In this document: positions 34,477 to 60,191 of the stretch, in pieces
Layout of the letters: each line of letters opens with the position of its first letter
Position numbering within the stretch: the stretch's first letter is position 1
Assembly (NCBI GenBank): GCA_004431415.1
Contig: QPMI01000637.1
Location: 186,001-250,000, forward strand
Direction: 5' to 3'
DNA: 64,000 bases
Origin: Cyanophora paradoxa CCMP329
Lineage: Eukaryota; Plantae; Glaucophyta
Notes under the pieces: model-generated
What the model saw: the letters and a program-made list of their open reading frames with translations, nothing else
Databases searched by the model: none
What the model was told of the DNA's origin: nothing
Made by a program: the position numbers and the translations under genes

Positions 34477-36451
34477 TGACCCTTGGGCCCATTCCTATTC
34501 CTGCTCTCGCTGCCCTCTCGACGCTCCTTTCCCCCATTCCCTGCGGTCCCGATCCCTGTGCTCCTTGGCCCTCTGGCCCCGCCTCTGCCTCCTCCCTCCT
34601 TACAACTTGCTGTCACGGGGCCTCTTCACTTGCCTGTTCCCGGCAGGTCCCTGGTCATCTTGCAGCTCCATACCCTTCTTACATCTTCCCTTGCTCCTCC
34701 ACTTCCGCCCCTGCGAGGCCCTCTTTCTGACGTCCTCCTGGTTCAGCCCCTCTTCAGCCCATCCTTCTTGCCCCGCTTCTGCAACTGTGACGCTGGGCGG
34801 CACTATCTTTTTGCATGCCCTCCCGCCTCTACGTCCCCGGTCTCTTTGCGTCTGCATCCACTTTCCCGGATCCGCTTGCAGGCCCCTCGCCTCCAGAGCT
34901 CGCCATCACTTCGGCCTCCCTCGCCTCCGCTCTCGATTCTCCATACCCTTCGAATAGCCGCCTTCTCTCTCCTCCTCCGCCCTCCCTCCCCCCTCGAGCT
35001 CCGGGTCCTCGGCCTCTGCCCCGCTTCCGAGTGTTGGCGAGACTGTCCTCTTTTCGGTCTCCCGTCATTCCGGCTCCCTGCTCCCCCTTCGGCGCCTCGG
35101 GTCCCATCTGCGGGTCCTATCCCGCTTCCTGGCGCTCGTGAGATTCGCCGCCGGCGCCCTCGTCGGGCCCTTGCGCCCTCGAGCTCGTCTCTCTCTGCGC
35201 CGCCCATGGCCATGACCTCCGTGTCATCTGATCCGGCGCCACCCGACCTTTCTCCTGCTTCGCTGCCCTCTCTTCGGCGCCGGCAGCGATCCCCGTCACC
35301 TGCTCGCGGCCCTTCCCCTGCCTCCGACCCTTCCTCGGCTCCCTCCTCGCCTCTTCCGTCTCGTCGGCCCCCGCCGCATTCCCGTCGGCGGATCTCTCGA
35401 TCGACCCTGGACTCTCCGCCTGCCACTGTCTGTGGGGTACCTCCGCCGCCGTGTTCGGCGCCGGCTGTCAGTACTTTGCTCGGTAGCTCCCCCGTCGTGG
35501 CTCCTCGGGGGCCTCTTCGTCGTCGTCGTTCGCTGGGTTCCGGCTCCGGGTCAGATTTCTCGCCGGGCTTACCTTCTCCTGGCTCTGCTCCTGGGCCCTC
35601 AGCTCCGGGACCGGCTTCCCCGATCTCCTCCCGGACTCGTGGACGTACCCGTCGCCGGCTTGCCGAGCCTGCGGCTCCTTCTACTTCCCCCCGGCGGTTT
35701 GCCGGGCCGGACCCTCCGGCCTTTGTTCTTGATACCGGACTGCCGCCTTTGCCTTCGTCTTCTGCTTCGCTGGTCGCGATCGTATCCCGCCGGCGCCGGC
35801 GTACTTCTTCGTCTTCTAGTTTAGTTCGGTCTGGTTCGGATTCTGATCGTAGTGTTGATGCTAGAGTTAGTTTCAATACTAGCAATAGTCCTCGTGCTCG
35901 ACCTGTTGTTCGCCGTCGTTTGCAGTTCGATTGCCCGCCTCGACCCCGGCCGGCTTTAGTGATTCCTTTGACTGTCCTTTTGCCTGCTCTTGATCCGCCT
36001 GCTCCGCCTCCTGTGTCCTCCTCGACCTCGTGCCGTAGCTCTGCCCTTTCGCATCGTCCTGCTTCGCCTCCGCCTCCATGTCGTCTTGTTGTTCCTCTTA
36101 CTTGTCTTCTTCCTGTTATTTATCTTTCTCAATTTTGTCCCCCGCTTCTTAGTGATGTAACATTCCTTCTGATATTGATGGTATCTCTAGCCTAGTAGCT
36201 CTGGCTCTTCTTCGTGTCAGTTCTCCTCTGTCCCTAGATCTGCTCGATTTATCGTCTCTTCTCGCTATCGATCTGTTTCGAGCTCTGTGTCTTTCCTTTT
36301 TTATTGTCGATTTTGGCTCTTTGTTTTATCTTTCTTCGTGCTCTTGTCTTAGTTATATATAATTATTTTGCTTTTTTGTCTTTATGCCCCCTGGGCAGCC
36401 CCCGCAGTGCTGGTGTCTAGAGACTGTGGCCGGTAATTCACCAAAAAAAAA
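32018..36451 (+). mobile_element. 5'-truncated non-LTR retrotransposon, L1/Tx1-like
   Basis: A 13-bp target-site duplication TTCTTCCCCCCTT at 32005-32017 and 36452-36464 flanks the element, with an A9 tail at 36443-36451. The element starts inside the RT domain (NGWTSAPFPIRCGVRQGGPLSPYL). Confidence 0.9.
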
Positions 36452-36817
36452 TTCTTCCCCCCTTGCAATAATTTGCTCCGATCCTTTCCCTCCTCTCCAG
36501 CTCTAGATCTCCTTATTCGAGCCGTCGCCCCGGGTGTCTTGGTTAATTTCCCTTCCCCAAACCTTACGTAAACTATATAGCGAGCCATAGACGGCGCTGG
36601 GAAATTCCAAATACCGCTGGGAATTTCGATTTCTTTTAAGCCTAAGCGTCCTGGCCCTTTCCAGCGGTGGCATTCTGATGCGGAAGGCTTGCAATTAACC
36701 CTAATCTAAAATGTCGGACACTTCACATGAATAACACTTCGTTTATAAGACGCGCTATAGGGTTGCCACGTATGTACGTAAACGCGCTGTAGCTTGTAGA
36801 CTGGCGGCCTCGGGGGC

Positions 36818-39800
36818 TCAAGAGATGCTACACGCCGAAGATTTGGATTTGCTGCGAGCCGCGGCTGCGGTCATCGGCGCCGGGGCTGGCGCGGCTGAGG
36901 GAGGATTCGAAGGCGTTGGTACGGCGCCTTCGAGTTCCTTTGCAGCGCGCGCCTCCCCGAGCTTGCGCCTGGCCTGCCCGACCCGCGCCGCGCGTCAGCG
37001 GCAAGTCGCACACGCGTACGACGGCGTTCGCCGAGTTGTACACGCGGCCAACCCGCCGCGGCGCGGGAACAGAAGCATGAAACCCCGCACCGCTTGGAGG
37101 CGCCTCAGCTCCTCCTTGAGGGCGGAGAGCTCGCTGGCGCTGGCGCTGGCGGATGCAGATGCCTCCTTCTGCACATGTACGGCGGATGCAGCACCGGCGG
37201 CTTCATGGGCAGCTGCCGTCGCCTCGGATGAGCTCAGCGCCTCGGCTCGATCGGAGCTCGCGATCGGCGTGGACTGTGCCTGCATGACCGCCTCCACATT
37301 CTGCCGCTCGCTCGCTCGCTGAGGGATCCCTTCGAAGGCACGCGGGCGGGCTCGCACCGCGAGGAGGGCGACGCTGCCGTGGGTGAGGAAGACGTGCACC
37401 AGCTCGTCCCCCAGCACGCCGCCCGGATCCTGGCCCGGGGGCTCGGAACGATTGGCGGGCTCGGAAAGATGGGCGGAAGGTGGAATTTCGAATCCGGGCC
37501 TCGCCTCTAGATCTCCCTAGCTTCGAATTCTTCGCACCGGGAGGGTCGCCACCACGACGGGCCGCAGCGGGCGCTTGTTGATCTCGGCGAGCTGCGCGGG
37601 GGCGCGCCGGCGCCAGAGTCACCGGATGAGAATGCCTGGAGATAGGGGGGAGCGGGGGCGGGCGAGGGCGGGCGGGCCTGGAGGCGGTCGCGGAGGAGGG
37701 GCTCGGCGAGGGACACCTCGGAGAGGAGGGGCACGAAGGCCGCGCAGCGGACGGCGGCGCGGTCCGCCCCCGCGTGCCCCTCCGCCCCCTCCCCCGCCCC
37801 GCCCTGCCCGCGCCGGCGCAGCGCACCTGAGTCATGCGGGGGAGGGCGGGGGCGGGCGGAGGGGCGGGCGGCGCACGGCGCATTCTGCCCAGCAGAGGGC
37901 GCCGCGGTGCAGGAGGGCGCGGGCCACCTGCAGCGCCATTGGCGCGTCCTGGCCCCGGGGGGGGCTTAAGCCTCGCAAGTAGGAGCCACTGTAAAGCTCT
38001 AATCGATGCAAAAGAGGCGCACCGGGAGAGAGCACCAGAGGAAGACGAAGGGGCGGGGGCCCTCCAAATCGCAGCGGGCGGCGCGCAGCTCCGCGGCCGC
38101 CGCCTCCGCATCCTCGGCCGAGGCGGCCGAGCCGTCGCCCGCGGGGCCGGCGCCGCCGGCGAGGCGCTGGGAGAGGACGAGGGCGAAGTGGGGCAGGCCC
38201 GAGGCCAGGAGCTCCGCTCTGCTTTACTGAGTTAGTTTGTCCGCGAGGGGCCGGGCCATCTGTTCGGAGTTATTTTTGCGGAATTTAATTTGGCGCACGA
38301 CGAGAGATCTGATGGGGGGACGCTCGCGAGTGCGCAAAGTTCAGCTGCCAAACGGCCGTTTAAAATCGACCGAAGCACGAACCGGCGAACTGCTCGGATC
38401 CAATATTAATATATTGATATCGAGTGCGAAGATATGTGAGATGACATCGATTTCGCAGCGCGTTGCTTCAAGACCGAACCTGCGTCTTCAGGAGGTATCC
38501 CTGCGCGAAAATCACGATTCCACCCCGACAAAGACGAGAGCGCGTGTGCGGAGTCGCAGCTGGCCTGTATCTGCTCGTCGAGGCTGCACTTCTCCAGCCA
38601 GACGGGGTAGACGGCCCGCCCGAGGCGCCGGGCCTCTGCGAGGTGGCCGCGGCAGAGCTCGCCGCCCACGCCCGCGGCGCTGACCTGCACGGCTCGAGTG
38701 AGAAGGGGCGCGGGCCCGATCGAAGGCTCAGCCGAGAGCCCCGAACCACGAGCACGACCACCGTGGCGATCGAGAGGCCCTCGTCCGGGTCTTCGGGATC
38801 GCAGCACTGCGCCCACGTGCGGGCGTGAGGCAGACAAGCGTCGCTTAATTCATGAATCGCTCTCCAGAGGGTCCGGCGGCCGCGGGCGTACGGTGATCCC
38901 AGCTGCCTCAAGGGCGGCCCGCAGGGCGTGTGCGAGCGCCCTGTCCGGCGCGGCTCCAGCTCGACTGGCAACACGTAAACACAACGACGCTGACGGAAAA
39001 CATCGAGGTAGGTCCGCCTCACCTGATGAAGACGTCCTTGAGCTTTGCGGCCCGCTTGAGCGCCGCCTGGGCGTGCGAAACCCGTCGTGTGAGAAAACGG
39101 ATGGCTTCTTCGACGTTGACGGGCGCGGGCCGCGCAGCTCGGACCTGGAAGTTCAAGTCGGGGTGGATCTGCCACACCATCCTGTGCGCCCAAGGGTGAT
39201 TCTCGAATCTTTAATCACGGGCAGGAATGCAGGTCTTCTAGATCTAGACGCTAGAGCGCGCAAGCCGTGCGCGGAAAGCGGGCGCGAACTTTCGCGTCGC
39301 GCTGGATGCGGACTGCAATGTGCGGCTTGCGTCGGCCCCTGCCCGCGCACTGAGCCGCTCGGAAGGGAAGCGGGTGGATCGCGAGGGCGGATGCTCACCG
39401 CGCGATATGAGCAGCTCGCAGACGGCGAGGAGGGCGGGGCCCGAGGCGACGGCGCGCGAGAGGGCCGTCTCCCCCTCCACGTCCCGCCCGCTGCGGCCCG
39501 CCCGCCCGCCCGTCAGCGGCGCAGGCGGGCGGGGCGCGCGGGCGGGCGGGCGCGCTCGAGGTCGGCCTCGGGGGCGGCGCGGGCGAGGCGGAGGGCGGTG
39601 AGGTGGAGGCCGTGGCGGCACGCGCACGCCAGCGCCGACTCACCCCCGGGGCCCGCCTCCACATCGACGTCCACCACGCCGTCCCCCTCGAGGCGCCCCT
39701 CGAGCTGCAGGAGCCGCATCGCGCCGGCCAGCAGCCGCGCGGCCCCCGGGGGCGGCGCCACCGAGATCAGGCTCTTCCCCGCGCTCGAGGTGATCACCAC

Positions 39801-42800
39801 GTGGCCCTCGTGATTCTCCGGCACCTGCGCAGCGCAACAAAGCCGAATGAGAACCACAATAATGTCACATTGATTACAGAGCAAAACAAAAATCTCCGCG
39901 CCAACGGGTTCTGCCAATCAATCTCCGAGCGCTTCACAGGGCCCGGGAGGGAGAGCAGCAGGTCCAGCGCCAGCCTGCACGCGCGGGTGCCCGCGATCGC
40001 AATCTCGAGCCCGGGCTCGAGCGGCGCAGGCGCAAGGCGGGGCCCCCGCGCGCACCGCCCGTGATCGAGGCCGCCTTCCATTCGCACGGCCCACCAGATG
40101 ACGCTGGCGAGACTGCGGGGCGTCAGCGCGAGGCGTCGCGTGTGCAAGTGGAGGGCACGTGCACGAGCTTGCACGCACGCTTGCACAGATTTGTCTCTTT
40201 GATGGCCCGTGTCCAGATCGAGAGAGAGCTCGCCGCTCGCGAGCTGCTCCAGGAGGAACCCTCGGAGCGCCGGTTTGTACCAGCTATGCGCCAGCGCGGC
40301 TGCCACCTCGGCCCGCGATGCAGGCACAAGCTGGAAGAGTAATCTGCGCGAGGCATCGACAGCGATAGCGACGTCGGCTGGCGGCGGGGCGGGCGAGCGC
40401 ACTGGAGGCCTTCGACGTTGCCCTGCTTGGCGAGGGAGACGACCACCGTGTCGCCGGCCTTCGTCGCCGCGGCGGGGTCGGCGCCGCTGCGCAGGAGCGC
40501 GCCGAGGGCCTCAGGCGGGCAGTTCGCCGAGCCCGCGGCGAGCAGGAGGGCCGTGGCGCCGCGGCTGTCCCGCTCGTGCACGTCCGCCCCCGCCGCGCAG
40601 AGCAGCTCGACGCAGCGCGCGTGGTCCGCCGGTCCTCCCACCTTCCCGTTCGCGTTGGCGGACGGCTTGGCCGCGTACAGGAGCGCTGACTGGTTCTTCT
40701 CGTCGCGCATATTCACGTCCGCGCCGCCCTTGAGGAGCACCCTGGCGTCAGAGGCGAGGATCAGAGTGGGAATTTCGCAGCGTTAAGGAATTCGAAATTT
40801 GCGGCTTTCGCGCACTCGACTGCCGAGGCACACGCGCGGCGCGCGGCGCTGTGGAGGGGCGTCGGGCCGTCGCCGCGCCGCTCGCCCTCCTTCCGCACGT
40901 TGGGGTTGGCGCCGCGGGCGAGCAGCATGCGGTAGACCTCAGGCTCGTCGACCAGCTCGGCGCAGAGGCCGAGGGGCGCCACGCCCGCGCTCCGCACGTT
41001 CGGGTCCGCCCCCGCCTCCAGCAGCAGGCCCAGGACGGCGACGAGCCCGCGCTCGCCCGGCTCCCTCGCCCCGTAGCCCGCCGCCCCCACCGCCGCGAAC
41101 ACCGCGCCCTCGTTGCGCCCGCCGTGCCGCACGTCGGCGCCCCTCTCCAGGAGCAGCCTCGTCATCTTCGCGCTCTTGAGCGCGCTGAGCAGACCCTCGT
41201 TCGGGTCGCCACCGCTGTCGAGGGCCAGAAGGAGCATCTCGAGGGGGTCGACGCCCAGACGAAGGTCTTGGGGGCTCCTGAGCTTCCCAGCCGCGCCGTC
41301 CTTCAGATCGCCCTCCGCCCGGACGGCCGCGGACACGAGAGGGGCGAGGAACTCGCAGCCGCTGAGCTCCGGCATGGCCTTCTGCTCGGGGGAGAGGCGT
41401 GGGACGACGCCGCGGGCGATGAGGTGCCGCGCAAGCGGAGGGTCGGCCGAAGGCCCGTGCAGAACGCGGGCGAGCGCCTGCACGGCGGCCGGCGTGGCCG
41501 GTGGCAGCGCTATTTTTAGGTCGTCCAGGAGGCTGGGCGCACGGAGGGGGGGGGGGGGGTGAGGATACGACCCGGACAACGGTTGCGGGCTTGGAAATCG
41601 TATATACGCGCACAGAAGATCGTCGAGGTCGAAGAGGGAGAGGGGGTAGGTGCCAGTGCGGGCAGCGGCGTGGCCGCCTTCGAGGCTGTAGCAGGCCGAG
41701 TGGTCGAAGTGCGCGAGCGGGGGCCCCTCCTTGGCGAACGGGTCCGCCCCGCGTGCGAGGAGCTCGCTGATTATAAGTGGAGAACGGTGACGAGGTCAGC
41801 CTTGCAATTGCGACGTGGTAGCCGCGAGCAGCGCGCGATGCTCACCGGATGACGGCGGCGCGGGCGCGGCGGGAGCCCTCCAGGCGGGGGTCCCGCAGGA
41901 GCAGGGCGAGGTAGAGGGCGCTGTGGCCCGCCGAGTCCCGCCCGTTCGGGTCGCACCCGCGCCCCAGCAGCTCCCTGCCCCGCTCCCGCGATCAGCGCCG
42001 CCACGCATACGATCAACGGCGCCGGCATTTAATCTTCTCAATTGCATGCACATGCGCATGCCTGACAGAGGAGAGGTCGTTGTTGACGGCCGCCTGGGCG
42101 AGGCACGGGGCGTGGATCGGAGGTGATGGCTTGTTGGCGGACAAGATCGAGGCCCGCACGGCCTGGAGCGGGTGGCAGGAGAGCTCGAGCGCCCTCGGGG
42201 CGCGGCAGTCCGCGCCCAGGGCGAGCAGCGCCCTGGCGGTGGCGGAGTGGCGGCCGGCGAGGGCGAGCCCGAGGGCCGAGGGGAGGCCGCTGCCGGGGCG
42301 GTCCACGGGGGCGCCGCGCTCCGCGAGGAGCCGCACGACGCCCGCGGCGCCGCACGCAGCCGCGAGCTCCAGGGCCGACGGGCCCGCCGGCTCCGGCGGG
42401 GCCCGCGAGGGCCACGGCGCTGCGGTAACGGGCGAAACGCGTGTCGATGCGCGAGCTGCTGCGACGCGTCTTGAAAGAAAGACGCACTTCGCTGCTGGAT
42501 GAAGCAGGGGTCTGCGCCCTTCGCGAGAAGTTCCCTGGGCGGCCACACACGTGAGCGACGAGATCGAATCGAGATCGAATCGAGTGCCGACCTGACGGCT
42601 ACAAGTTTGCCGTTCGCGCAGGCGGCTTCGATGGGAGAGCCGAAGGAAAGGAAGGCCGGCGCCTCGGAACCGGCCTTCACGCCAGGCGGTGTCAAAACGA
42701 GTGCCGTCGCACTCGCACCGTTATCGAGCAGCAGCCTGGAGCAATTTCATTCAGTGAGAATCAGATTTGAATCTATTCAGTAAGAAGCGAATTAATTCGG

Positions 42801-45800
42801 TTAGGAGCTTGAATGAAGAGCGGGACTAACAAAATAACGTTAGCATGCGCAAAATCGAGTTTTCAAGAGCACCTAAGGACCTCCATCGAACCAGACCCAG
42901 CAGCCGCGACGAGGGCGCGTTCGGTGTCGCCCTTGTCGAGACCGCCCGAATCCAACAGCGTTCTGCGGCCTCCTTTAGCTGCAGGGGGGGACAGAAATCG
43001 GGCATTGCCCGTCGAGAAGAAGGTCCCGCACTGGGCCAGCTCTGCGTCGCCACGTTTCGCGGCCGCCTCCAGCGCGGCAGCGCGGCCGGCGGCACCCCGC
43101 TGCAGCAGCGCGCTGCACGACCGGATCCGGAGCGTCAGTCGTCAGTCGAAGATATCGCCTTTACGAAATTGAAATTTCGAGTGGAAGGGCGAACCCAACG
43201 AGAGCGATGAGGCCGGCTTCAGCTGCGAGCTCAAGCGCCGTCCGAATCCGCGCGCCGGGAATAGACAGGTTCGTATATGTGGCTTCGCTCACGTCGCAGC
43301 CCGCCTCCACGATGCACCTGACGCGGACGCCGATCGTGAGGTTAATGAGGAGCCGGCCAAACAGTCGAGATCCGCGGGGGCGCACCGCGCTATCTCCTCG
43401 TGGTGATTCGCGATGGCCGCCTCGAGCGCCCGCTGCCCGGTGCACGGCGAACCTTGCCGCATCGCCACGCCGAGCTCTGCTCCCGCTTCCAGGAGCGCCC
43501 GAACGACAGCGACGTGGCCGGCCGCGGCGGCGGCGAGGAGGGCCGTCGCGCCCTTTTCCCTCGGGGCGCCCTGCACTCCCGCCAGGTGCTCGTCGCGGGC
43601 GTTGACGTCGGCGTCCCGCTGCAGGAGAAACCTGTGCTGGCAGTGACGGGGACGGAGATCTCGAGAGTGCATATTCAAAGCGCGCAGAAATTGAAAGGCG
43701 CACCTAACAGCTTCGACATCGCCGCGCAGCGCGGCATGCACGATGGGCGGCCGAGTTTCGGGGGCGGGGCGCCCGCTGGCGTCCCGAGTCCAATGGTGCG
43801 TCCAGCCGCCCGGCGGGTCCTTCTGCGTACTCCATTCAAGAAGCGCGCCCTTTGCTGGGGAGCTTGTGTTCAAATTAACAGCGAGGCCGCGCGCCTCCAG
43901 CAGGCTGCGAGGCGCGTTCGGGCGCGCGAGGCAGCGAGAGCGGCTCGCGCGCGCGACTTGCAATTGGCGCGCACCGAACGACGCTGGGATGAGACAGGGC
44001 CGCCGCCTCCCCCGCGAGGCTCCACCTCGAGCCGTCCGCGCGCACCCCCTCCAGCTTGCAGCCCGCCGATACGAGGAGCCTGCCGCGAGTCGAGCCATTT
44101 GAAAGAGACCTAGCTATAGGATGGGGAGACAGCAGATCCAGACAGGCGCACTCGAGGGCCTCCCGGTGGCCGCAGCGGGCGGCGGCCAGCGCGGCCGTCA
44201 TGCTCGAGAAGGGGCACGCGGCCTCGAGGTCCGCGCCGGCCTCGAGCAGGAACCGCAGCGTCGCGACGTGCCCACCCGCCCCGGCGCACACGATGGCCGG
44301 CGTGAAGGGCCTGCCCGCCCTCGCCCCCGCAGCGTCGAGCCCCGCCCCCAATTCCACAAACACACTGCGCACGTGGAACGTCCATTAAATTGGAGCCGGG
44401 CACCTTAGATAATTAGCGGTGCGAAGCCTCGACAAGGTTTTTAAAAGGCCGCGGTGCTGACCGCACGCAGTCGAGGTGACCCTTGACTGCCGCGAAGCAG
44501 ACCGCCGTCGGCCAGTTGGACAGGCTGCTCGCGTCGCTAAAGTTCACGTCGATGCCGTCGGCTGCGAGCGCCCTGCGGCACGAACATCAATATTTGCTCG
44601 CGTGCCCTGGGTCACATCTCTAGATCAGGAGCCTAGGCCTGGCCTCGGCCCCCGCGTCGTCAATCGCTCAGCGGCACCAACCAGGTCCCGGCCACGGCCA
44701 CGACTGGCGCGGATCCGGCCCCACGGTTTGCTATTTGTCAAACAGGACCCCCCCCCCCCCCCCCCACCGGCGCACATTCCAAAAAATATTGAAAATCTAG
44801 GCTGGCGAATATGGAATTTTAACATTTATATATACGTATGGCGGACCTGACGGCAGGGACGCTGCCGCCGATGGCCGCCCACACGAGGGCGCGCTCCCCC
44901 GGGTTCTTGTCCCAGTTAGACTCCCTTCCCCGCAGCTCCTCCAGCATCGTCCTGTGCGATGGATTTCGAATCGTCTTTGACAGAGGGTGGGGCGGGTGGG
45001 GCGGGTGCGAGAAGTCGAAGGCACCGCACCGGAGAGATTCGACGTCGCCGTGGTGCGCGGCCATCTCGGCGTCTTTTGGGCCAAAGAACCCCCGGCAGCG
45101 CACTCCGCTCTCGAAGAACGCGCTGTCGCGGGCCGCAATCGTGGGCAGCTGCACGGCCAAGTCGGCTCTAGATCTGGTCTGGGATCGCACCGGAGGAGGC
45201 TCGCGGGCGTGGCGGGCGCCGCCGCTCGCGCGAAGAACGCGGCCTCCAGGGCTTCCTCGGCCTCCTTCGCGGGGAACGCGTCCGGGGGCCGCACGGCCCC
45301 CAGCAGCGCCCGCACGCATCCCTCGGACCCGGCGCGCGCCGCGTCGAGCAGCGCCGTGCGCCCGCCCCGGTCGGGCGCGAGCGGCTGCGCTCCGGCGTCG
45401 AGAAGCGCCCTGAAAACAAAGAGATTCCCCGATTAATATTAGCCGCATGCGCAGTGCGCGCCGCCACTGAGCTAGAGGGCCGGCGCGGGCCGGGCCGGCC
45501 GCGGGCCGGGCCCGCGGGGCGCCGGCCCGTGCCAGGCCGCGCGGGAGACGTGCGCGCGGGCTACAGCAGCTTAGAAGCGTTCTCTGCAAAGGGATGAAGC
45601 ACCTAACGGCGTCGACGTGCCCGGCGGCGGCAGCTTCGTGAAGGGCGGACCGCCCCTCGCGCCCCCAATCGCCGAGCGCGTCCCGAGCGACCTCCAACGC
45701 ATTGCTGCGCATCTTGAATGAGCCAGGAGATCGCCCGAAGGCATCTACATGCATATGTGTGCGCATGGCGGGCCGGCGTGGGCTGAATGCGGACCGGAGC

Positions 45801-45880
45801 GCTTGCACGTCCCCCGAGCGCGCCGCTCGTTGCAGGGCCGTCAGACCATCGGTTCCGACGTCTGGAGGCTTCTCGTCCAT
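36818..45880 (-). CDS. Multi-exon ankyrin-repeat / TIR-like / TIR-like / coiled-coil protein with C-terminal CaaX (CSIS); catalytic TIR Glu replaced by His
   Basis: Starts MDEKPPDVGTDGLTALQRAARSGDVQALR and contains many ankyrin repeats (e.g. GPTPLHSAARR, GADVNMRDEKNQSALLYAA). The spliced TIR reads KDVFIS|RAGAAPDRALAHALRAALEAAGIT|..VVVLV|VSAAGVGGELCRGHLAEARRLGRAVYPVW. A second TIR-like block (AAFVPLLSEVSLAEPLLRDRLQA) and LSALKEELRRLQA follow. The protein ends ARSKSKSSACSIS-TGA (36820-36818). Confidence 0.75.
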
Positions 45881-45996
45881 CAGGGGCAGTGCCTCCGATC
45901 AACGCCGGCCGGGGGTACGCATCGCGATCCGCGAAAGGATGCTCTTCAACAGTTCGTGTCCTAGGCTTAGCAGCAGCAGTCTGCAGCGCAGAACAG
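45881..45996. promoter_or_regulatory. Putative compact bidirectional promoter between the divergent ANK-TIR paralogs
   Basis: Only 116 bp separate the minus-strand ATG (45880) and the plus-strand ATG (45997). Both start codons are inferred. Confidence 0.5.
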
Positions 45997-48900
45997 ATGG
46001 AAAAGGCTTCTTTTGACGTCTGTGCGAGAGGGGAGGGTTGGCGGACGCCTCTAGATGCTGCTGCGGACGCTGGCGATGTCTCCACTCTCAGGTCCGCATG
46101 CGCGGCGGGGGGGCGCATGCGCGCGCTTCAGCCTACAGCGCTTTCCAATAGTATAAAGTGGTTCAAAGTACGCGCGAGGGTGCATCTCCGGTTCTATAGC
46201 TATGCGTCAAACGCGAGGATAGCTGCTGCGCGTGCGGCGCGCCTAGATCGGGTGCAGTAAGATGATCGTGTGCGCTCTAACGGCGCTCGTAAGCGCAGGT
46301 CGCTCCTCGATCGCGGCGGGGAGCTCCACTGGCACATCAACGACTGCGGGCCCGATGGGTCGACTCTCCTCCTCCGCGCGGCGGAAGCAGCACAGGATCA
46401 GGGATCCGACCGCAATCTGGAGGTCTTCAGGCTGCTCCTCGATCGCGGCGGACGTGTGCGGCCGTTCCCCTTAGACAGGGACGGCGCTTCCCTCGCGATG
46501 TGTCGCGCCCTCGCCGCCGCGGGTGGCAAGCTCGACGAAGCGGACTTCCGGTGCGAGCCCGGCCCCGCGCGACGCTTTCGCCGCGCGCGCCGACGTCGAG
46601 CGCGGCCCGCGACGTCGATCGCGCGCAGGCGCATCCTGCAGGAGGCCCTGAAGAAGGACTTTGTCGGAGCGATGAAGGGATTCGCCGCCGCCGCCTGCTC
46701 AGTTGCCCGCTGGGGGCAGCATGGCCTCCCCCTTCTGAGGTACGCGTGCTTGCAGCTTGCCGGGGGTCCAACGGGAGCGACGGCCGCCGCGGCGCACGCA
46801 GGCAGCTGCTGGGGTGGTACGCGGGGCCGAAGGCCGAAGGCTGGAGCGAGTGCTGGGCCCTTCCCCTCTGGTCCGCCGGCGCCGAGCTCCCCCGCCAGCT
46901 TCTGGCGGCCACGTGCGAGGGCGGCAGCCTAGAAACCGTGAGGTGCCCACGCCCCCGGCCCGCGCGCGACGCCTCCCCATGGCCAATCGCGAGCGCATCC
47001 CGACCGTGCTCAGGTTCGTGGCCGAGGCGGCGGCCCGCGAGCTGCGCGACGACCCGTGGACGGCGGCGCTCGTCGCCGCCGCAGGCTTCGGGCGTCTCGA
47101 CGTCGTAAAGTGTGCCTCCCCCCCCCTCCCCCCCCTCCCCCCTCCCCCTTTCCCCCCCTCCCCACACCCGCACCCACACACCCACACCTACACACCCTCA
47201 CCAACCCCTACCCCCCTTCCCCCCTGCGAACCCCCCCCCCCCCTTATATCCCTTTCCTCTGTGCCTCTGCCCCCTCCCCGCCCCCGGCCCGGCCGTCCCC
47301 TCCCCCCTCCCCCTCCCCCCTCTCCTCCTCCCCCCCTCCCCACACCCACACCCACACACCCACACCTACACACCCTCACCCCCCCTCCCCCTCCCCCTCC
47401 TCCGAACCCCTCCCCCCCTCCCCCCCCCCCCCCCATCTCCATTTCCTCTGTCCCTCTGCCCCCTTTTTTTGAAAGATGAATTCGCACACACCGTGTCCCT
47501 CTGCCCCCTCCCCGTCCCCCCGCCCGGCTCGCCCCTCCATCCCTCTCCCCTCCTCCCTCCCTCCCTCTCCTTCAGTCCGGGTGACCCCTGCCCACAGGCA
47601 TCTGGCCGGGGAGCGGGGCGTGAACCCGCGGGGTAGCCTGAAAACGTACGGCTCGCCGATCCACTGCGCGGCTCGCTTCGGGCACGAGGAGACTTTGAGG
47701 TGCGCATGCCCCCGAGCTTGGTTCCATTCATGTTCAGCTGCACACAGAGCATTCAATCGCGAGAGGGTGGCCTAACGCTGGTGCTGCGACAGATACCTGC
47801 TGGAATTGCCGGTGCAGGAGGCGGCATCGGTCGAGGCGGCCCCGAATGCAGGCCCAAACGCCTCGTGGCCTCCCATCTTCGACGCGGCGACCAACGGGCA
47901 CGCCGCCTGCTGCTCGTGCGCCCTGCCGTCTCTCTTGCCCGCAAAGCGCCCCGCTTCAGCTCATGCCGTCGCACCAGCCTCCTCCTCGAGCGCGGTGGGG
48001 CGGATTTCAAGGCGCGGTACAGCAAAAACGAGTTGTGGGACGATCGGAATCCCAGGTGGACGCTCCTGGAGGCGGCGGCGCGGGGCGGGCACGTCGAGTG
48101 CGTGGAGCTCTTCGTCGGGGCGGGGGCGGACCTCGCGGCTGAGGGGCCCGCCCTCGTGGCGGCCGCCGCCGAGGGAGGCCACGCCGAGATGATCCGGTGC
48201 GCGCCGGTGCTGCGCGAAGATCCGAAGGTCGCGGTCGCCGCCTGACGCGCAAGGCCCCGGCCCGCGCCGGTCGCGGTGCAGCTTCCTCGCCTCGCGAGGC
48301 GTTCCCGTCGACGCCGACCCGTCCGACGCGGGTCGGAACCCTCCGATCGTCCTCGCCGCCCAGCGCCTCCGCGCTTCCTGCATCCGGTTCGTCCTTGTTC
48401 GAGACTGGAACCAAGCTTGCAATGTGAATTAAATTAAATACGATCTGCCACATGTACAGGGTTCTCGCGGAGTTGGGCGCCGCTGTGGCCGCACCGGCCA
48501 CTGACGGCTCGCTCGTCCTCCACGAAGTCTTCGTGCCCGTGCGCTCTTGACATTCTCGTGTTTCCGCCCCTGTTCGAGCGAGCGCCGCCGCCGCAGGTCG
48601 GGCTCGCTTTCGGGCAGGGCGCGGAAGACCAGTCCCGCGCGGACTTCGCGGGCGAGCAAGGGGCCAGGCACATGCAGGCGTGCTACGCGTGCCTGCGCGA
48701 GGAGGCGATCCGGTGAGCCACTGCAGCTGGAGCCTATCTGTGAGCCCTCCCTCCCTCACCTGGGCGTGATCGCGCAGGGCGTGCCTGGGGGTCGGGGCCG
48801 ACCCCCGGGCCCGGGACCGAAAGGGCCGCAGCCCGCTGCACAGGGCCCTCGCCCTGGGCCGCCACCTGAGCGCCTCCTGCTTGCAGCTGTGTGCGCACGA

Positions 48901-51900
48901 GTTCGAGCTCGCGCCGCCCGCGCGCACGTGCGATGTTGTGCTGAGAGCGGCGCCCGGCCGCGCAGTGCTGGAGGCGGGGGCGGAGGTGGACGCGGAGGCG
49001 CTCGACGGCGCCACGCCGCTGATGACGGCCCTGAAGCCGGGGGCGGCAGCGCCATCGTCCGACGCAATCGCCCTGCTCCTCGACCGCGGGGCGGACGTCT
49101 CCAGGCACGCGCGCACCTCGCACCTGCGTTTGCAAGAGATTCCTTACTGCATATTCTCCGCTACTCACTTGCGATCTCTGTCTTTCCTCCCCGTGCAGGC
49201 TGGCCGTGCAGGGCGGCCTGGCGTGCCTCTCGCCGGACCTCGCGCTCCTCCGCCGCTTCCTCGCCGCGGGGCTCCGCGCCGGCCTCGACGGGGCGCTCGT
49301 CCGGGCGCTGGGCGAAGGCTTCGCCGACGTCGCGGAGATCGCTGGGGAGCTGCTGGCGGCGGGGGCCGACCCCGCGCGCCCCCCCGCCCTTTACCACGCT
49401 ATGACCCTTGCCGAGGAGCCCGCCCTCCGCGGCTTCGCGGCGGACTTCCTAAGGCGCGCCCGCGCCCGCCGGCGCCGGCCCCGTGCCGCCCCTAAGTTGC
49501 GCGGGCGGGGGCAGGCGGGCGCTCGAGGCGGGCGCCGACCTGAACTACAACTCCCTCGAGCTGGACCTCCCCCGCGAAGTCGGCGCGCGCGCGGCACTCC
49601 CTCGGACCCCGCCAAACGACCGAGAAGCGAATCTGATGCTGCGCGCCGGCATGCGCAGGCCGACCCATCGCGGGGGCGGTGCAGGCCGGCTCGCCGGACC
49701 TGGTGCGGGCGCTGGTCGCGGGGGGCGCCTCGGCGCGCCCGGAGAGGGGCCGGCTCCCGCTGCTGTGGCTCGCCTTGGACCGGCCGGCGCAGGACTTCGA
49801 GCTCTCCGTCGAGCTCGCCAGGCGCGGCGCACCTCGGGCCTCCGCTCGGCTCTGAAGGTCGACGTCTTCTTCAAATCGATTGTCGACGCGCAGGATCCTC
49901 GTGCCCGCCGGCGCCTCGTACACGGACGTTGGCCCGCGCACCGAAACGGTGCTTGGGAGGGTCATGCAGGCGGGCCCATCCTACGCGCTCCGCCCCGCCA
50001 TCGTCCGGTGCGGGAGAGACCGCGATGCGTCGTGATCTCACGGCTTATGTTTTGCGGCTATTGTCGTCGATTTCGCGGCTGTTGTCGTCGACTTCGTGGC
50101 GAATGCCGTTTTTCGCGGCTGATTTCGCGGCAGGTTCGTCCTCGAGGAGGACGCGCGCGCCGCCGAGGCGCCCGACGCGCCGCGGCCCATCATCGCCCGC
50201 AACCCCGACGGGACCCTCAGCGGCATCGCCGCCAGGTCCCGTCCCCCTCCGCCCCGTCCCGCCCCCGATCGATTGCCTCGCGCCCTACGCCTCGCGCCGC
50301 TCATGATCGCCCGGCAGCTATGTTCTGACGTGCTTCAAAAGCGAGCTAAACGCGGACGACTGGCGGTGGGCCGGGCCGCGGCCCTTCTTCGCGAATGCTC
50401 CGATTCCGATCCGCCCACGCCAAGATAACCGCGCACGGTGTGGCTCGGCAGGCTGGCGCTCGATCTCCTGCTGCGCTGCGAAGGGCGGCTCCACGCTCTG
50501 GACTTCGTCAGGCCGCAGATGAACCTGCGGGTGCATGCGCAAGCGCACCGCCGCCGCCGTCCGCTCCCCCCGCCGTCAATGCAAAGCCTGACAGTACATT
50601 CCGCGCTGCCGCGCGCGCCAGAGCCGCGCTCCGGGTTCGGATGAGGTGCTGCGCGCCGTCCTCCGGCTGGCGGTGCTGGAGGGGCGCGTGGACCCCGACC
50701 CGCCCCCCGCGGCCTTCGAGAAGCGCGAGCCCTTCGCCCCCGAGGACGGCCCCGGGGGCGAGTCGGCGCTGGCGTGCGCGTGCCGCCACGGCCTCCGCCT
50801 CACCGCCCTCCGCCTCGCCCGCGCCGCCCCCGAGGCCGATCTCGAGCGCGCCCCGCCCGCCCGCCCCGCCACCGCCCGCCGGCGCCGCTGACGGGCGGGG
50901 GGGCGGGCCGCAGCGGGCGGGACGCGGAGGGGGAGACGGCCCTCTCGCGCGCCGTCGCCTCGGGCCCCGCCCTCCTCGCCGTCTGCGAGCTGCTCCTGAA
51001 GCGAGGCGCCGACGTTGGCGCTGTCGTGGGCAAGGCGGGCAAGCAGAGGCGCGCCTCGTTACCGCCCGGCCGCTGCCTCCTCGTCCGCTCCGGATCGAGA
51101 GCTTGAATGCCGCTGGGTCGCGGGGTCCCGGTCTCGCGCAGGCCCGTGCTGGACTGCACACGGGACGCGGAGTTCCGCGCCCGCCTCAAGAGACTCGCCG
51201 CCGTCCGCGACGTCTTCATCAGGCGCGCGCTCGCGCGAGATTTCTTTCCGAGGCGCCCCCCCCGGCCCCCTGTTTCCTCACGCGAGATCTACCCCCTCAG
51301 CTACGGGCACCACCCGCCGGAGGTCGCCCGCTTCACGGTGCAGCTGCGAGACCAGCTGCAGGCGGCCGGCGTCTCGGTCCGTCGAATTCGAATGTATATC
51401 CCCTCTGCCGTCGAAAGCGTCTCTTAACGCTCGATTTATTGCCGATCTTCGCAGTGCTGGGTGCGCCGACGTCCTCATAATTAAATGATGACCACATTGC
51501 GAAATCGCAGATATATACGCGCAAGATTTATAACAATATTCATAACTGGACGGGTGCGCAGCTGGACGAAAGCAAGCCGTCGGGGATCGAGGCGGGCACC
51601 GAGTGGCGCGAGCAGATCGGTGCGCTCATCGCCTCCAACCTATAGCCATAAATATTCGCTCCAAGCTTCTCGCTCCCTCTCTTCTTCGTAGCCTTAAGAT
51701 GTAATTTGCATGCGCAGGCGCGGGTATCAAGGCCGCCAGTGCAGTCGTCTTCGTTGCCAGCAAGGCGAGTCCGACGATCTAAATTCTTTCCAGTTCGATG
51801 CTCGCGGCTGACTCTCTCGGCCGCGCCTAGCACTCGTGCAACTCGGACTGGTGAGCGCGCGCTTTGAATTCCCGCCCAATGTCTGCGCCTCCTGATATGC

Positions 51901-53767
51901 GCATATGCATGCATGTATACGTAATTGTACGCTTTGCTTGCAATCGCTGCGCCAGGTGCATGCTCGAGCTCAGCCGCGCGCGCGGTGCGACTAATTTGTT
52001 CGCTCCAAATATATACTTTGATGCGGATCCCGGACCCGCTCCGCGCAATCCTTACTCTCGCAGACCTCGGCCGCCCGCTGTTTGCGGTCTGGAGGGAGCG
52101 CTGCCCCGTCGACGACCGCTGCGCGGTGCGTCCCGACGCGCGAGCTGCGCACGCCTTGCAGCAGCTTCAAGGCCCTGGAATTGAAGCTGCGCGCTCTCGG
52201 CCCGAGCCCACGGTCTCGCAGACGCTGCTCCTTGGCTGCCCCGCCGCCGATTTCACGACGTCCGTCCCCGTCGCGCTCGGTCTCGGGCCCGGCCTCTTCG
52301 TCTCCTGAGCGTCGGCTCTTTGCGTGGCGGCGCAGGGACGAGGCGCTGGGCTCGGGCCTCGCGCCCTTCGTCGCCTCCCTCCGCTCGGCGCTGGACGTGC
52401 CCTCGCCCTCGTCCGCGCCCCCGGCCGCCCTCCCCCGCTGCGACCTCGCCGCCCCGGAGCCCTACTGCCTCCTCTGCTGCCGCCGCGAGGTGCCCGGCTC
52501 CCGAGCACTCCCTCTCTAGATCTCCCGTTTGGCGTCCTAGCCTGCCCGCAGGACGCTTCGGAGGCGGCCAAGGTCGCGTCGGCGCTCTCCTTCCGGGGCC
52601 GCCGCTGCTGGGTCGACTGCGACCGCGAGGTGCACGTGGGACCCTCCTCTCAATCCCCCGCTCCGGCCCCCGGCGCCCCTTTCAGCTTCCATGCCTCCCT
52701 CATAGAACCTGCCTTTCGGCTTGTGGACGCTCACAGTCTCCCGTTCGCGCCCCGCGAAGGGGGACGCGATGGCGGCGGAGGAGGCGGAGGCGGAGCGCGC
52801 GCTCGCCGGCTGCGCCCTCTTCGTGCCCCTCCTCTCCCGGGACGCCCTGCGCGGCGGCTACCTCGCGGAGCGCACCGAGGCGCGCCCGCACGCGCAGCGC
52901 GTGCGTGTCTGTGTGTGTGCGCGCGCCTTCTGAGCCCCCGGCGGCTCCGAACGGCGCAGCGAGCGCGGGCGCTGGGGCGGGCGGTCCGCCCGCTGCTCCT
53001 ATTGCCGCTGGTGGTGCCGGCGGCGCTGGAGTATTCGCTCGCGGCGCAGCCCCTTCTCGCCCTCTTCGACAACGACGAGCCCCGCGCCGTTTTCGCGGTC
53101 CGAATAGTCATACAAAGAGCCCCCAGCACGCCCGCCTGCCTGCAGGCGTGGAATCCGGCTTGGACGGTTTTGACCGTGGGCGGTGCACCAGATCGCGGAC
53201 GAGGTGCTCAGGTCAACCGTATCGGCGGTGCCGTCGACGTCAGGAATATCGTATGAGGCGATTTCGAAGGCAAGAAATCGCACATTTGTAATTAGCAGTC
53301 GAGTTCCGGGCTCGAGCACCCTCCTTCTTGTCAGTCTGACATGGATGCAGGCGGGGCTGGGGGAGGAAGGGCACGGGGCGCCGGCCGCCGTTGTCGGTGC
53401 GGGCGGGGCTACTGCGGCGCCCGCCGCGCCAGCTGCGGGCGGTGCGCCGCAATCGGAGGAGGACGCCCTGAAGGCAGAGATCGCCCGACTGCGGGCCGAG
53501 CTCGAACAGCTGCAGGCCAGCAGATGCCCCACCCCTCGCGCCGTACCACACGTCCTCTCGCTTAGTAAACCCGGGCAGGCTGCGCGGGAGGCGCCGGCGG
53601 TGCCGCCACTAGATCTGATCCAGCCCGGACCCACTCCGCAGCCGCAGCCTCAGCCGCGCGGAGAATTGCAATTGGGTGCTGCGCGGGGGCATGCAAGGCC
53701 GCAAGGGATAGCCTCACCGCAGCGTGCAGATGCACGGTCATCGAGCTCTGTGTGCCTTATCATGTAG
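45997..53767 (+). CDS. Multi-exon ankyrin-repeat / TIR (intact catalytic Glu) / TIR-like / coiled-coil protein with C-terminal CaaX (CLIM)
   Basis: Starts MEKASFDVCARGEGWRTPLDAAADAGDVSTLR, followed by ankyrin repeats. Splicing exons at 51209-52125 gives DVFISYGHHPPEVARFTVQLRDQLQAAGVSCWLDESKPSGIEAGTEWREQIGAGIKAASAVVFVASKHSCNSDWCMLELSRARDLGRPLFAVW, a TIR_2-type domain with Glu at 51966-51968. A second TIR-like block (KVASALSFRGRRCWVD..ALAGCALFVPLLS) and EDALKAEIARLRAELEQLQA follow. The protein ends SSSVCLIM-TAG. Confidence 0.8.
47116..47571. repeat. Intronic C-rich low-complexity tract with an internal ~190-bp duplication
   Basis: Poly-C/CT/CA runs. CACCCACACACCCACACCTACACACCCTCACC and TTTCCTCTGT(G/C)CCTCTGCCCC each occur twice. 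Confidence 0.8.
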
Positions 53768-54082
53768 CTCAGCGCCGCGCGCCGCCCACTCGTACGTGTA
53801 TTTTAGTACGTATATGCATATATATAAGCTTACGGTATATACGAATGGCTCATAATTACGCGCCTCGGGGGCTGCGGTCTAAAATCTGGCCCCCATCTTC
53901 CCCCACCGCCCCCCCCCCCCCCCCCCCCCGCCCCGCCCTCACCCTGCTCATGGCCCTCACCCTGCTCATGGCCACCAGCTTCGATTCATGGCCGCCATTG
54001 CAGCGGCGGTAGCTGCAGGAAAAGGGTTGTAGAATTAAGTCTTAATTCGCTGATGGGACATCGCTCTCAATTGCAATGACGA

Positions 54083-56182
54083 TCACGGGCCGGGTGCATG
54101 CAGGGGAGGCATTAATATTGGCATCCTCGCGTACAGAGCTGCGGCATCGACTTGGGTCGCTGCAGCTGGCCGCCCTCCGAGGTCCGGGTGATCATGACCT
54201 GGCGGCAGCGCGCGGCCCTCCGGAGGGACCGTGGGGGATAATAAAGGGCCTGGAGGGCCCGGGGGCCGCCAGACCGACGCCGGCACCGGCGCCGGCCGCG
54301 GGGGCTGGCGCGCGGGGTCGGGGTTCGGGAATGGGGTCGGGTGAGAGGGGAACGCGGGCGGCCCGTGCGCGAGCTGCGTCGGATCGGGGCCGGCAGCAGC
54401 GCCGGCGCCGAGCACGTTGGCTTTGGATTAGGGGGGTAGGAGGTGCACGTTTTCGTGGGACAACCGGCGGGCGCTCGAGCAGAGCCCGTGACCGGATGCT
54501 GCCAACGGCCCCGGAGGCGCGAGCTCGAGAGGAGGGAGGGGCAGGCGGGGCGGGGGCAGCCAGAGCAGTGGAGGGCCGGCCACGAAGCTCTGCGGGGGGT
54601 AGGGGAGGGCCGCGGCCGGGCCAGCCTCGGGGGGCGACCCGAGCTGAGGCCGAGGATAGCCCGAGGGCGGCGGGAGCGCGATGGGGATGGGCCCCGGAGG
54701 CGCCGGGGAGGAAGCCATATGGGCCAGCGGGGGGGGAGGGCCGGAGCGGGAGGTGGGGCCCACGGCCAGGCCCAGGGAGGCAGCGACGCGCAGGGACTCT
54801 TCCTGGAATCGAGCGAGCTCCTCCCGGAGCTGCAGGCTGCGGGCGGCCAGCGAGGGCGCGTACTCCAGATTCAGAGCGCCGGGGCCATGCGCCCCTCTCC
54901 GCATCGATTCCATCGCGTCCAACTGCGCCCTGCAAAACGGAGCGACACGCAATCAGATCTAGAGCGAGCGGGGCGAGGCGGGCGGGCGGACGGGCGGGCT
55001 CTGTTAGCCGGGCTTCATGCCCCGCGCACCGGTAGGCGTGAAGTTCGCCAAGGGTACGAGAGCTCGCCTCGTGATCCGCGGCAGAGGAATGTTCCAGCGG
55101 CTGCGGCCACGTGCACTCGCCGACCGGGTCCAGCCGCAGGGACGGCCGCGGCGCGGGAGGCGGAGGGGGCCCGGTTGGCGCGCCAGGCGGCTTGTGTGGC
55201 GCGGCCCGCGCTGAGCCCGAGGGATGCGGGGCCACCAGGTAGGTTAGGGGAGGCGGAAGAACGGGTGTTTCAGGGGGCGAAAAGGATTGGAAAGGAACGG
55301 GGGGCGGGGGGAGGGGCGCTAGCGGCGGGACATGGGCCGCCTGGGTGGCAAGGGAGGAGCGGGCGCGCGGGCCCGGGGTCCAGGCCACCACCGCCGTGGC
55401 CGCCGGCACCGGGACGAGAAAGTCGACAGAGAGAGAGGGCAGCTGCGCGATGGACGCCGCCAGACCCGACAGCGGCCCCGTCGCCGCAGGAGGCAGCGCA
55501 AGCGGGGCCAGCGGGGATGGAAAGCGCGGCGTCGGCGGCCGCGGCGCCGGCGGGGATCCGGAGGCCGGCCCGTGAGGCGTCCCGTGAGGTGCGAAGAGCG
55601 GCTGCAGGCCGCTGATCGCGAGGGGAGCGCGGCTATCTCCAGATTCGGAACCCCGTGGACCTCCCCAGCTCGCCATGGATGGCGCCTGCGGCGGCCCGAG
55701 GCCGGCTCCGTCGCCGAACTCACGAGGATAGGCCTCGCCGCCGGCCGCGGGAAGCCGCCTGGTCTCCAGTGACGCCGGATGGTCCACTGCCGGGTTGCCA
55801 GGAGCGCAGAGCGCAGAAATGGACACCGATTTCGAATTCGCTCGCGCGAGGCGGGATTTGGAGCGCTGGCCGGTCGAAGCGGCCCAGCTGCAGGGGCCCG
55901 CGCGTGCATCTGTGCCGTACGCGTTGTTTGCGGCGGGAGATGGCCGCCCCGGCTGCGGCTCGGGCCCGTCCGATCCTCGCCTCAGCGGTCGACGTCGCGA
56001 CAAAGACGGGACGGCCTCCGGGTCCGCGAGACTCCTTTTGCGACGCTTGAATCTCTTCTCGTCCAAGGCAAGGCGCTGATTACCGGCATCCTGCGACGAA
56101 AAGGAAATAAGGAGGCAGGCGGTACTTCAGTCCGTTATCGCATATATAGAATAATATGTACAGTTCTATCTCTCCCGAGCAT
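54083..56182 (-). CDS. Pro/Ala/Gly-rich hypothetical protein (spliced) with a basic NLS-like motif and a short coiled coil
   Basis: Putative MLGRDRT|DAGNQRLALDEKRFKRRKRS, long open Pro-rich frames and LAARSLQLREELARFQEESLRV. No domain was recognised and both ends are uncertain. Confidence 0.45.
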
Positions 56183-56327: not shown

Positions 56328-56612
56328 CACACATAGTAAAATGCGGAGTTTTAACCCTCGGCTTATCTTAATTGATTTTGTTGATATATCTCGTATATTC
56401 TATTTCAATCAATCGATAATCTGTGTATATCTTATCGAATATTCAATTATTTCGATTATTTTGTATTCTTTTCGATATTTTATCGTAAATTTCTCTTATT
56501 TTCCGATTAGTCTTACTGAGTCTATCGATAATCTGTATATATTTCCGAATAATATAACTGAATCTCAATTAGATCTTGCCTCTGGTTAAAACTCCGCATT
56601 TTACTATGTGTG
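56328..56612. repeat. 285-nt imperfect hairpin with perfect 29-bp arms at the element boundary
   Basis: CACACATAGTAAAATGCGGAGTTTTAACC (56328-56356) and its exact reverse complement (56584-56612). Inner in-register pairs are GGC/GCC and TAATTGA/TCAATTA. Confidence 0.95.
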
Positions 56613-56865
56613 ATTGGTCTAAAAGTTAATTGATTTAATCGATATTATATTCATGTACTTTCTCGATTAAATTTAATTAAATTTAATTCATTTAATCGGA
56701 AATATATCGCTAAACTCGATTAAGATCCATAAAAGATTCATTTGTTAAATAAAACAAATCGATCTCTTATTGAATTCAATCGTAATTATACATGAAACTT
56801 ATATGTTTTTATCATTGTTTTATTGAGTCTAAGGGGGGACCCTTAGGAATTTAATGAATAATTGG

Positions 56866-56955
56866 GTGTCACAGGTGTCACAGGTCCATCCAAACTTTTG
56901 GAAATTCACTCTTTATAGGAGAAACTTTGGGATAGACCTGTGACACCTGTGACAC
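56866..56955. repeat. 21-bp perfect inverted repeat made of tandem GTGTCACAG units
   Basis: GTGTCACAGGTGTCACAGGTC (56866-56886) and GACCTGTGACACCTGTGACAC (56935-56955). Pairing continues imperfectly inward. Confidence 0.95.
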
Positions 56956-57302
56956 ATACCATATTCAGTAAGGACCTCATATATTGTTAAAATCTCAGTG
57001 TTAGTTGGTGTAGTTGATTCAAAAAATGCATTTTATACTCTGATTCATTGTTATTTCCTGTGAAATTTGAGTCAACTCAACCCACTTAGTCAACCCTTGC
57101 ATTGAATTCGTAACAAAAATCCATATACTATTACTACTTTTACGATTAATATGAGTCAACCTAGAGTCCACTTTAATATAAATATTATATAATAGGGGGG
57201 ATCAAGGGGAATGTTGAATTTTACTGTAATGAAATCGAACATTATTCCAATTACTTACAATAGAATTCTATCGTAAAAAATGTCCGGAATCCGGAAAATA
57301 AT

Positions 57303-57367: not shown

Positions 57368-57417
57368 TTATTGTTAGAAAACAAAGGAATCCTTTAGAAA
57401 TTCATTATAGAAACCCA

Positions 57418-57816: not shown

Positions 57817-57845
57817 TAAGAATACCTTAGAAAAATGAATTAATC

Positions 57846-60188: not shown

Positions 60189-60191
60189 TTA

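Follow-up and report, generated by a model that had tools for sequence, protein, structure and literature searches.

A head-to-head pair of ankyrin–TIR–TIR genes in the glaucophyte Cyanophora paradoxa: a candidate two-gene receptor with a divided NADase site

The window analysed here is a stretch of 64,000 nucleotides (nt) from the genome of the freshwater glaucophyte alga Cyanophora paradoxa (contig QPMI01000637.1), in which two paralogous genes, g21701 on the minus strand and g21702 on the plus strand, diverge from a common intergenic stretch and encode proteins with N-terminal ankyrin repeats, two TIR domains (TIR1 and TIR2), a predicted coiled coil, and a C-terminal CaaX end. One partner carries an intact-type TIR1 (type E, g21702) and the other a degenerate TIR1 (type D, g21701). 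As judged from aligned family members, the losses of conserved TIR surfaces in the two types are reciprocal, type E retaining the catalytic face of TIR1 and the DE face of TIR2, and type D the DE loop of TIR1 and helix C of TIR2. E partners have thereby lost an ancestral DE-loop motif that D partners keep, which points to a shared active site. The pair may thus be a TIR receptor made by two genes, probably for defence, whose chains are obligate partners in a heterodimer and build a single composite active site; this reading is given about an even chance. Its more specific form, a membrane-anchored paired immune receptor outside the NLRs (receptors with nucleotide-binding and leucine-rich repeat domains), with the NAD+-cleaving (NADase) site split across two paralogs and both proteins required, is put forward as a serious candidate that falls somewhat short of even.

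The gene pair and its family

Exon models built from the window coordinates (Table 1) give 37 exons and 1409 residues for the plus gene and 41 exons and 1861 residues for the minus gene, neither with an internal stop. Introns are bordered by GT/GC and AG in all 76 cases, with a median length of 80 nt in the plus and 78 nt in the minus gene, and the GC content of third codon positions is 0.88 and 0.87, respectively. The two ATGs, each the first after an in-frame stop, lie 116 nt apart. In both genes the first intron is in phase 2 and begins with GTCCGCAT, the motif DVFIS is interrupted by a phase-2 intron, and 8 of 16 introns in the C-terminal 390 residues are common in column and phase, with about 0.3 expected by chance. 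Across the pair (36818-53767), GC donors occur in 15 of 76 introns and phase 2 in 45 of 76, micro-exons of 6, 7, and 10 nt fall within the TIR domains, and a 488-nt intron at 47110-47597 consists of duplicated C-rich runs and is preceded by two exons that the public model omits.

The published annotation (tig00021489), made with BRAKER1 trained on RNA sequencing (RNA-seq) data (PMC6704402), contains both genes, whose products were the two database proteins retrieved with a profile of two exons. The annotated g21701 agrees with the minus model at 1852 of 1861 residues, 7- and 10-nt micro-exons included, and g21702 agrees with the plus model at 1184 of 1409, containing all TIR1 exons but the 6-nt micro-exon, which the paralogs do have. 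The annotated start of g21702 was rejected, as it falls in intron 1 of the model, and paralogs open with the same first ankyrin repeat as model exon 1. Both models place a Cys four residues from the C-terminus (CLIM in the plus gene, CSIS in the minus gene). Because the annotated g21702 ends in a different frame, CLIM rests on the exon model and on the CaaX ends found in 10 of 17 annotated family models. An earlier, sequence-only reading of the window had proposed divergent paralogs with ATGs 116 bp apart, one domain order, common intron positions, and TIR domains that become visible and align without gaps once spliced; exon models and annotation bear out this arrangement, the RNA-seq-trained annotation supports the splicing, and the alignment was reproduced.

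Domain scans were made on the annotated database proteins. The TIR_2 profile PF13676, which the sequence-only reading had named as a check, matched both proteins above its cut-off of 28 bits (74 and 36.7 bits, in two stretches each). TIR2 alone scored 28.4 bits in the plus gene and 21 bits (E 5e-4), under the cut-off, in the minus gene, and single TIR exons had no Pfam matches. Ankyrin and TIR are the only Pfam families in both proteins, and, in agreement with the earlier statement that no NACHT or NB-ARC switch is seen, neither these nor LRR gave a Pfam match in the pair or in six paralogs. In each chain AlphaFold predicts two TIR folds (predicted local distance difference test, pLDDT, 77 and 80), and Foldseek searches with the models matched the TIRs of RPS4, SARM1, and Hydra TRR-2, among other alpha/beta folds.

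The helix-C segments of the two TIR1 domains align without gaps and place a Glu in the plus gene opposite a His in the minus gene. The plus TIR1 has the helix-C Glu and Trp and the BB-loop Asp/Gly of enzymatic TIR NADases, its Glu aligning, via a paralog, to the helix-C Glu of AbTir and PdTIR. The minus TIR1, besides the His, has lost the Tyr, the Trp, and the entire BB-loop/helix-B motif. TIR2 is a pseudo-TIR in both genes, with Arg at the Glu position and the BB motif deleted or replaced. The earlier contrast between one intact and one dead gene therefore stands for TIR1 and falls for TIR2, and a role of TIR2 as a second enzyme was rejected.

Searches with the TIR region returned C. paradoxa proteins only. 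The family comprises at least 17 members, 13 with an intact-type TIR1 (some truncated) and 4 with a degenerate TIR1. The D-type search covered proteins of at least 1033 residues, so that shorter or split partner models would be missed. All four D genes adjoin an E gene by gene number (g21701/2, g19209/10, g10180/1, and g22378/9); the head-to-head orientation was read for the window pair, the other three being neighbours by gene number alone. The sequence-only reading had proposed a search for other pairs with and without the Glu and had held that mostly unpaired members would tell against it; three more adjacent pairs came to light, and, as each of the four D genes found has an E neighbour, that objection fails for the D type. 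Three features are missing from all four D genes, namely the BB-loop/helix-B motif, the helix-C Trp, and the Tyr that follows strand A, and the Glu position is occupied by His in g21701, by Gln in g19209 and g10180, and by a retained Glu in g22379.

The D genes are 50-55% identical to one another in the TIR region and form one clade of the family tree, the partnered E genes forming another, each long-stemmed and with support of 100/100 and 100/99; g9371, g21388, and g11412 fall outside both. The pair was duplicated as a unit, since the sister relation of g10180 and g19209 is mirrored by the grouping of their partners, g10181 and g19210. Assembled transcripts exist for two D genes. Ankyrin arrays diverge faster than TIR1 (47-73% versus 89% in TIR1 for g19210 and g10181). 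The window pair has a common tract of 254 nt that is 95% identical, intron included, whereas most other introns compared are about 45-55% identical, which indicates recent gene conversion; no comparable within-pair similarity was found in the other three pairs. Taken together, the evidence supports a real, conserved pair that lacks a STAND ATPase and in which one TIR1 has its catalytic equipment and the other is degenerate.

Several family members show further features. The D-type genes g10180 (P0026) and g19209 (P0027) have, besides the CaaX end, a Met-Gly start and a Ser-rich stretch that form a possible myristoylation signal, and the model of g22378 (P0020) is joined to pyrroline-5-carboxylate reductase (P5CR), most likely by an annotation merger of two neighbouring genes. 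The genes g18416, g18418, and g10958 were rejected as independent singletons, because each is a near-copy of g19210 truncated at the 5' end; identity is about 99% for g18416 and g18418. No short TIR-only relatives were found among 8000 scored candidates of 0.55-1.75x query length, and no viral relative of TIR1 was found.

Reciprocal losses and a possible shared active site

Residues common to the unpartnered-type paralogs g9371 and g21388 served as reference, and those retained by type E only or by type D only were counted for each face. In TIR1 the counts (E only to D only) are 24:5 at the catalytic face and 1:4 at the DE face, and in TIR2 they are 0:5 in helix C and 6:0 at the DE face. This face-by-face split gives Fisher p values of 0.012 for TIR1 and 0.002 for TIR2, and a runs test on the retention pattern gives p 0.0004. 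With a distant eukaryote as reference the TIR1 split persists (13:2 at the catalytic versus 0:3 at the DE face). Moreover, 54 of 60 outgroup TIRs have the DE-loop Gln, as does every D gene, whereas it is missing from every partnered E gene. By profile alignment, the DE loop corresponds to about residues 678-680 of SARM1, give or take one residue, a region that lines the inter-chain ligand site (10.1101/2025.11.11.687870; 10.64898/2026.02.03.703613). In TIR NADases the site is made by two TIRs, one contributing its BB side and the other its DE/EE side.

A heterodimer with a composite site could explain this distribution. Both genes would be co-transcribed from their common 116-nt stretch, and both proteins would be prenylated and held at the membrane. 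TIR1 and TIR2 of one chain would form a covalent AE dimer, and two chains a four-TIR "dimer of dimers", an assembly known from ROQ1 and RPP1; in the tetramer of ROQ1 a single protomer per AE dimer contributes the active site (PMC13732033). The plus TIR1 would supply the BB loop, Trp, and Glu of the composite NAD+ site, and the minus TIR1 the DE loop on the adenine side, with the two pseudo-TIR2s making a second, non-catalytic BE contact in the opposite direction. The fast-evolving ankyrin arrays would bind a trigger, such as a virus or parasite protein, and so permit assembly, leading to NAD+ depletion or an ADP-ribose-type signal. In the ancestral homodimer, one chain would have used TIR1-BB and TIR2-DE and the other TIR1-DE and the BB side of TIR2; a self-sufficient ancestor like g9371/g21388 may have been duplicated, each copy retaining just the faces that it used, and linkage, a shared promoter, and membrane anchors would keep the heterodimer together. 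That the Glu comes from one paralog and the adenine face from the other, that the tandem pseudo-TIRs complete the tetramer, and that all this arose independently of the plant pairs is, as a whole, plausible but somewhat more apt to be wrong than right.

Several points weigh against such a shared site. The main one is that the strand-D Trp (W227 of AbTir, which stacks the adenine from the second chain) is retained in E genes too. Since, in addition, some DE contacts are made by the backbone, type E may still self-assemble. The relative placement of TIR1 and TIR2 in the AlphaFold models is uncertain (predicted TM score, pTM, 0.50-0.53), and no clear TIR2 split is seen with a distant outgroup as reference. 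Furthermore, the four pairs represent one evolutionary event, the alignment columns are non-independent, and the segment borders were drawn after the pattern was seen. The reference paralogs could themselves be E/D chimeras, because gene conversion occurs. Finally, the partnered-type E genes g7053, g2243, and g12088 have no partner among the proteins covered by the D-type search.

The sequence-only reading had likened the pair to RRS1/RPS4 and had assigned to the degenerate gene the role of restraining or scaffolding its partner. Accordingly phrased as a brake, type E would be a self-sufficient NADase that type D holds off until the ankyrin array of D senses a trigger. The lesions of the D-type TIR1 match those of sensor NLRs in plants, where the Glu is lost and the BB loop degenerate (PMC13732033), the strand-D Trp of type E would suit an enzyme complete in itself, and the active BE contact is homomeric in RRS1/RPS4 models (PMC13732033). 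However, a brake leaves unexplained the loss from partnered E genes of an ancestral DE-loop Gln still found in D genes, and also the mirror-image split in TIR2. A D partner that merely restrains or scaffolds a self-sufficient enzyme is, thus, not supported as that reading stated it, and the reciprocal losses appear to fit a composite-site heterodimer, acting as an AND gate, better than a pure brake, which is regarded as rather unlikely. Both models can overlap in a pre-formed inactive complex.

A role outside immunity is considered improbable. The pair would then be a prenylated ankyrin-TIR heterodimer that serves normal physiology, signalling at the membrane or sensing metabolism as a scaffold or a sensor of NAD. 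The trigger and pathogen link of the defensive reading are hypothetical, SARM1 is a metabolic sensor, and the active-site motif of TIR1 is very well conserved across paralogs. This does not sit easily with a family that has expanded to 17 or more members and shows diverging repeat arrays, truncation of some copies, and gene conversion, features that together are usual in immune receptor families. Very much less probable still is an inverted tandem duplicate whose minus copy is decaying without any functional partnership. The genome is gene-dense, with intergenic stretches averaging 770 bp (PMC6704402), and because of this dense packing close divergent starts are not rare in themselves. Nevertheless, the 1861-codon frame of the minus gene is intact over 41 exons, and the D genes form a clade of four in which each member adjoins an E gene, motifs are conserved, and two members have transcripts. 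A pseudogene or artefact was rejected, and pseudogenisation, which the earlier reading had named as a threat to its proposal, is not seen.

Known systems and relatives elsewhere

The paired plant TIR-NLRs RRS1/RPS4 and CHS3/CSA1 are likewise adjacent, divergent genes in which one TIR has the Glu and BB loop and the partner lacks both (PMC13732033). Held against this pattern, all four degenerate C. paradoxa partners have lost the BB motif and three of four the Glu, and head-to-head layout in the window pair is accompanied by adjacency by gene number in the other three. Unlike plant TIR-NLRs, the C. paradoxa pair is without NB-ARC, LRR, or an integrated domain, has N-terminal ankyrin arrays, two TIRs per chain, and a CaaX end, and its intact partner has itself lost a conserved face. 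As the pair is found in a glaucophyte, the likeness is most likely convergent.

SARM1/TIR-1 shares with the pair an N-terminal repeat array, a C-terminal TIR with the catalytic Glu, the absence of an ATPase switch, and a matching TIR fold, but it has ARM and SAM domains in place of ankyrins, a single TIR, and a homo-oligomeric state, and its ARM-SAM-SAM-TIR order is not found in the pair. Bacterial TIR NADases (AbTir, PdTIR, BtTir, TcpB, Cat1, and ThsB) are the best PDB sequence matches of TIR1, with helix-C Trp and Glu aligned, and PADLOC gave weak matches, but they differ as single-TIR homo-filaments with other flanking domains, and identity to the nearest bacterial TIRs retrieved is only about 30-40%. 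The ThsB_TIR profile scored 13.4 bits, under its cut-off of 21.2, and no ThsA-like gene was found among the open reading frames (ORFs) scanned. Dictyostelium TirE, compared by description, also combines a protist repeat array with two diverged tandem TIRs, but its repeats are RCC1 rather than ankyrin and a paired gene is not reported in the parts of the source available (10.64898/2026.04.30.722052). The pair therefore resembles a paired TIR-NLR in gene logic, yet it belongs neither to the NLRs nor to SARM1 or Thoeris.

Outside C. paradoxa, a marine metatranscriptome contig (L088, 3-1553) encodes ankyrin repeats, a TIR with the Glu, and a second TIR-like domain, aligning with the family over 260 columns with an HHalign probability of 98.8. 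As a marine eukaryote has this layout too, the scaffold predates the Cyanophora lineage. The same order is found in the eukaryotic loci L081, L083, and L107, the last with a visible intron of spliceosomal type. In loci of the L088 type neither the BB motif nor the DE-loop Gln has been lost, a state found in the unpartnered C. paradoxa type and not in the pair. Together with L099, these four are eukaryotic ankyrin-TIR proteins in metagenome or metatranscriptome contigs. L001, L082, and about 100 further loci encode bacterial proteins in which an N-terminal TIR with the BB-loop motif of the family precedes a membrane segment and a large C-terminal region; the pattern used in the search itself favoured this motif.

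The sequence-only reading knew of no such architecture, and a description of ankyrin-TIR pairs, or a link between Cyanophora and TIR proteins, was not found in the literature searched, which left aside most subscription journals. The C. paradoxa genome paper is without any mention of ankyrin (PMC6704402), and no mention of Cyanophora was found in the text or supplements examined of the EukProt TIR atlas, whose sampling will have taken in these domains. Many TIR clades of eukaryotes still await study, and the family and its gene pair are real and apparently undescribed.

Innate immunity in microbial eukaryotes is little known, and here the genetic logic of plant sensors and executors, linked genes with one TIR lacking the Glu or BB loop, appears on a non-NLR scaffold in an early-diverging algal lineage. 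According to a 2026 paper, a heteromeric TIR NADase had not been shown before RRS1/RPS4, and the models in that paper favour a homomeric active contact for RRS1/RPS4 (PMC13732033). If true, a site divided between paralogs would solve the problem in another way than RRS1/RPS4 and would be a clear case of a homo-oligomer becoming an obligate hetero-oligomer. The likely self-sufficient paralogs g9371 and g21388 are built-in controls within the genome, which would let small TIR constructs serve as a test.

Coordinates and neighbouring features

The features of the pair are collected in Table 1; a bacterial promoter scan does not apply to this window.

Table 1. Features of the head-to-head pair, in window coordinates; gene rows run from start codon to stop codon
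Feature	Position	Strand	Basis
E-type gene g21702, ankyrin-TIR1(Glu)-pseudoTIR2-coiled coil-CaaX	45997..53767	+	exon model, annotation, Pfam
D-type gene g21701, ankyrin-TIR1(His, no BB loop)-pseudoTIR2-coiled coil-CaaX	36818..45880	-	exon model, annotation, Pfam
116-nt inter-ATG stretch, presumed shared divergent promoter and 5' untranslated regions	45881..45996		putative promoter role
Ankyrin-repeat array of plus gene, exons 1-22	45997..51010	+	Pfam
TIR1 of plus gene, exons 23-32, 6-nt micro-exon at 51455-51460	51209..52393	+	model, Pfam, AlphaFold
Catalytic-position Glu codon, plus TIR1	51966..51968	+	alignment
Pseudo-TIR2 of plus gene, Arg at Glu position, helix-D motif retained	52460..53215	+	alignment, AlphaFold
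Short predicted coiled coil, plus gene	53456..53524	+	heptad pattern, weak Pfam coiled-coil-like matches; putative
CaaX end CLIM and stop, plus gene	53753..53767	+	exon model
Ankyrin-repeat array of minus gene, exons 1-26	39320..45880	-	Pfam
Degenerate TIR1 of minus gene, exons 28-35, 7- and 10-nt micro-exons	38155..39036	-	BB loop/helix B motif gone; DE-loop motif retained
His codon at catalytic Glu position, minus TIR1	38643..38645	-	alignment
Pseudo-TIR2 of minus gene, Arg at Glu position, helix-C motif retained	37277..38052	-	alignment, AlphaFold
Predicted coiled coil of minus gene, last intron within	36926..37138	-	weak Pfam Trimer_CC match; putative
CaaX end CSIS and stop, minus gene	36818..36832	-	model, annotation
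Gene-conversion tract, last ankyrin repeats, plus gene	50742..50995	+	254 nt, 95% identical to 39409-39659
Partner copy of gene-conversion tract, minus gene	39409..39659	-	nucleotide comparison

Downstream of the plus gene, a GC-rich gene-like stretch at 54000-56070, without Pfam or PHROGs matches, includes a long minus-strand ORF that converges on the 3' end of g21702. At 56328-64000, GC content falls sharply to 38% in a virus-like integrated element. It has a terminal inverted repeat at 56328-56612 and ORFs for an AdoMet decarboxylase, for two fibre-like proteins related to each other, and for a 1263-residue tail fibre with an S74 chaperone; no relative was found among viral contigs, and the element is possibly a Polinton-like virus of the alga. 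On the other side, just past the stop of the minus gene, a decayed stretch resembling a non-LTR (long terminal repeat) retroelement occupies 31200-36500 and gives a weak zf-RVT match (E 0.037). An intron-rich plus-strand gene at 19105-30164 encodes a large membrane protein with a weak REJ match and contains, at 19105-24162, three to four tandem units of about 1625 nt that are 81-100% alike.

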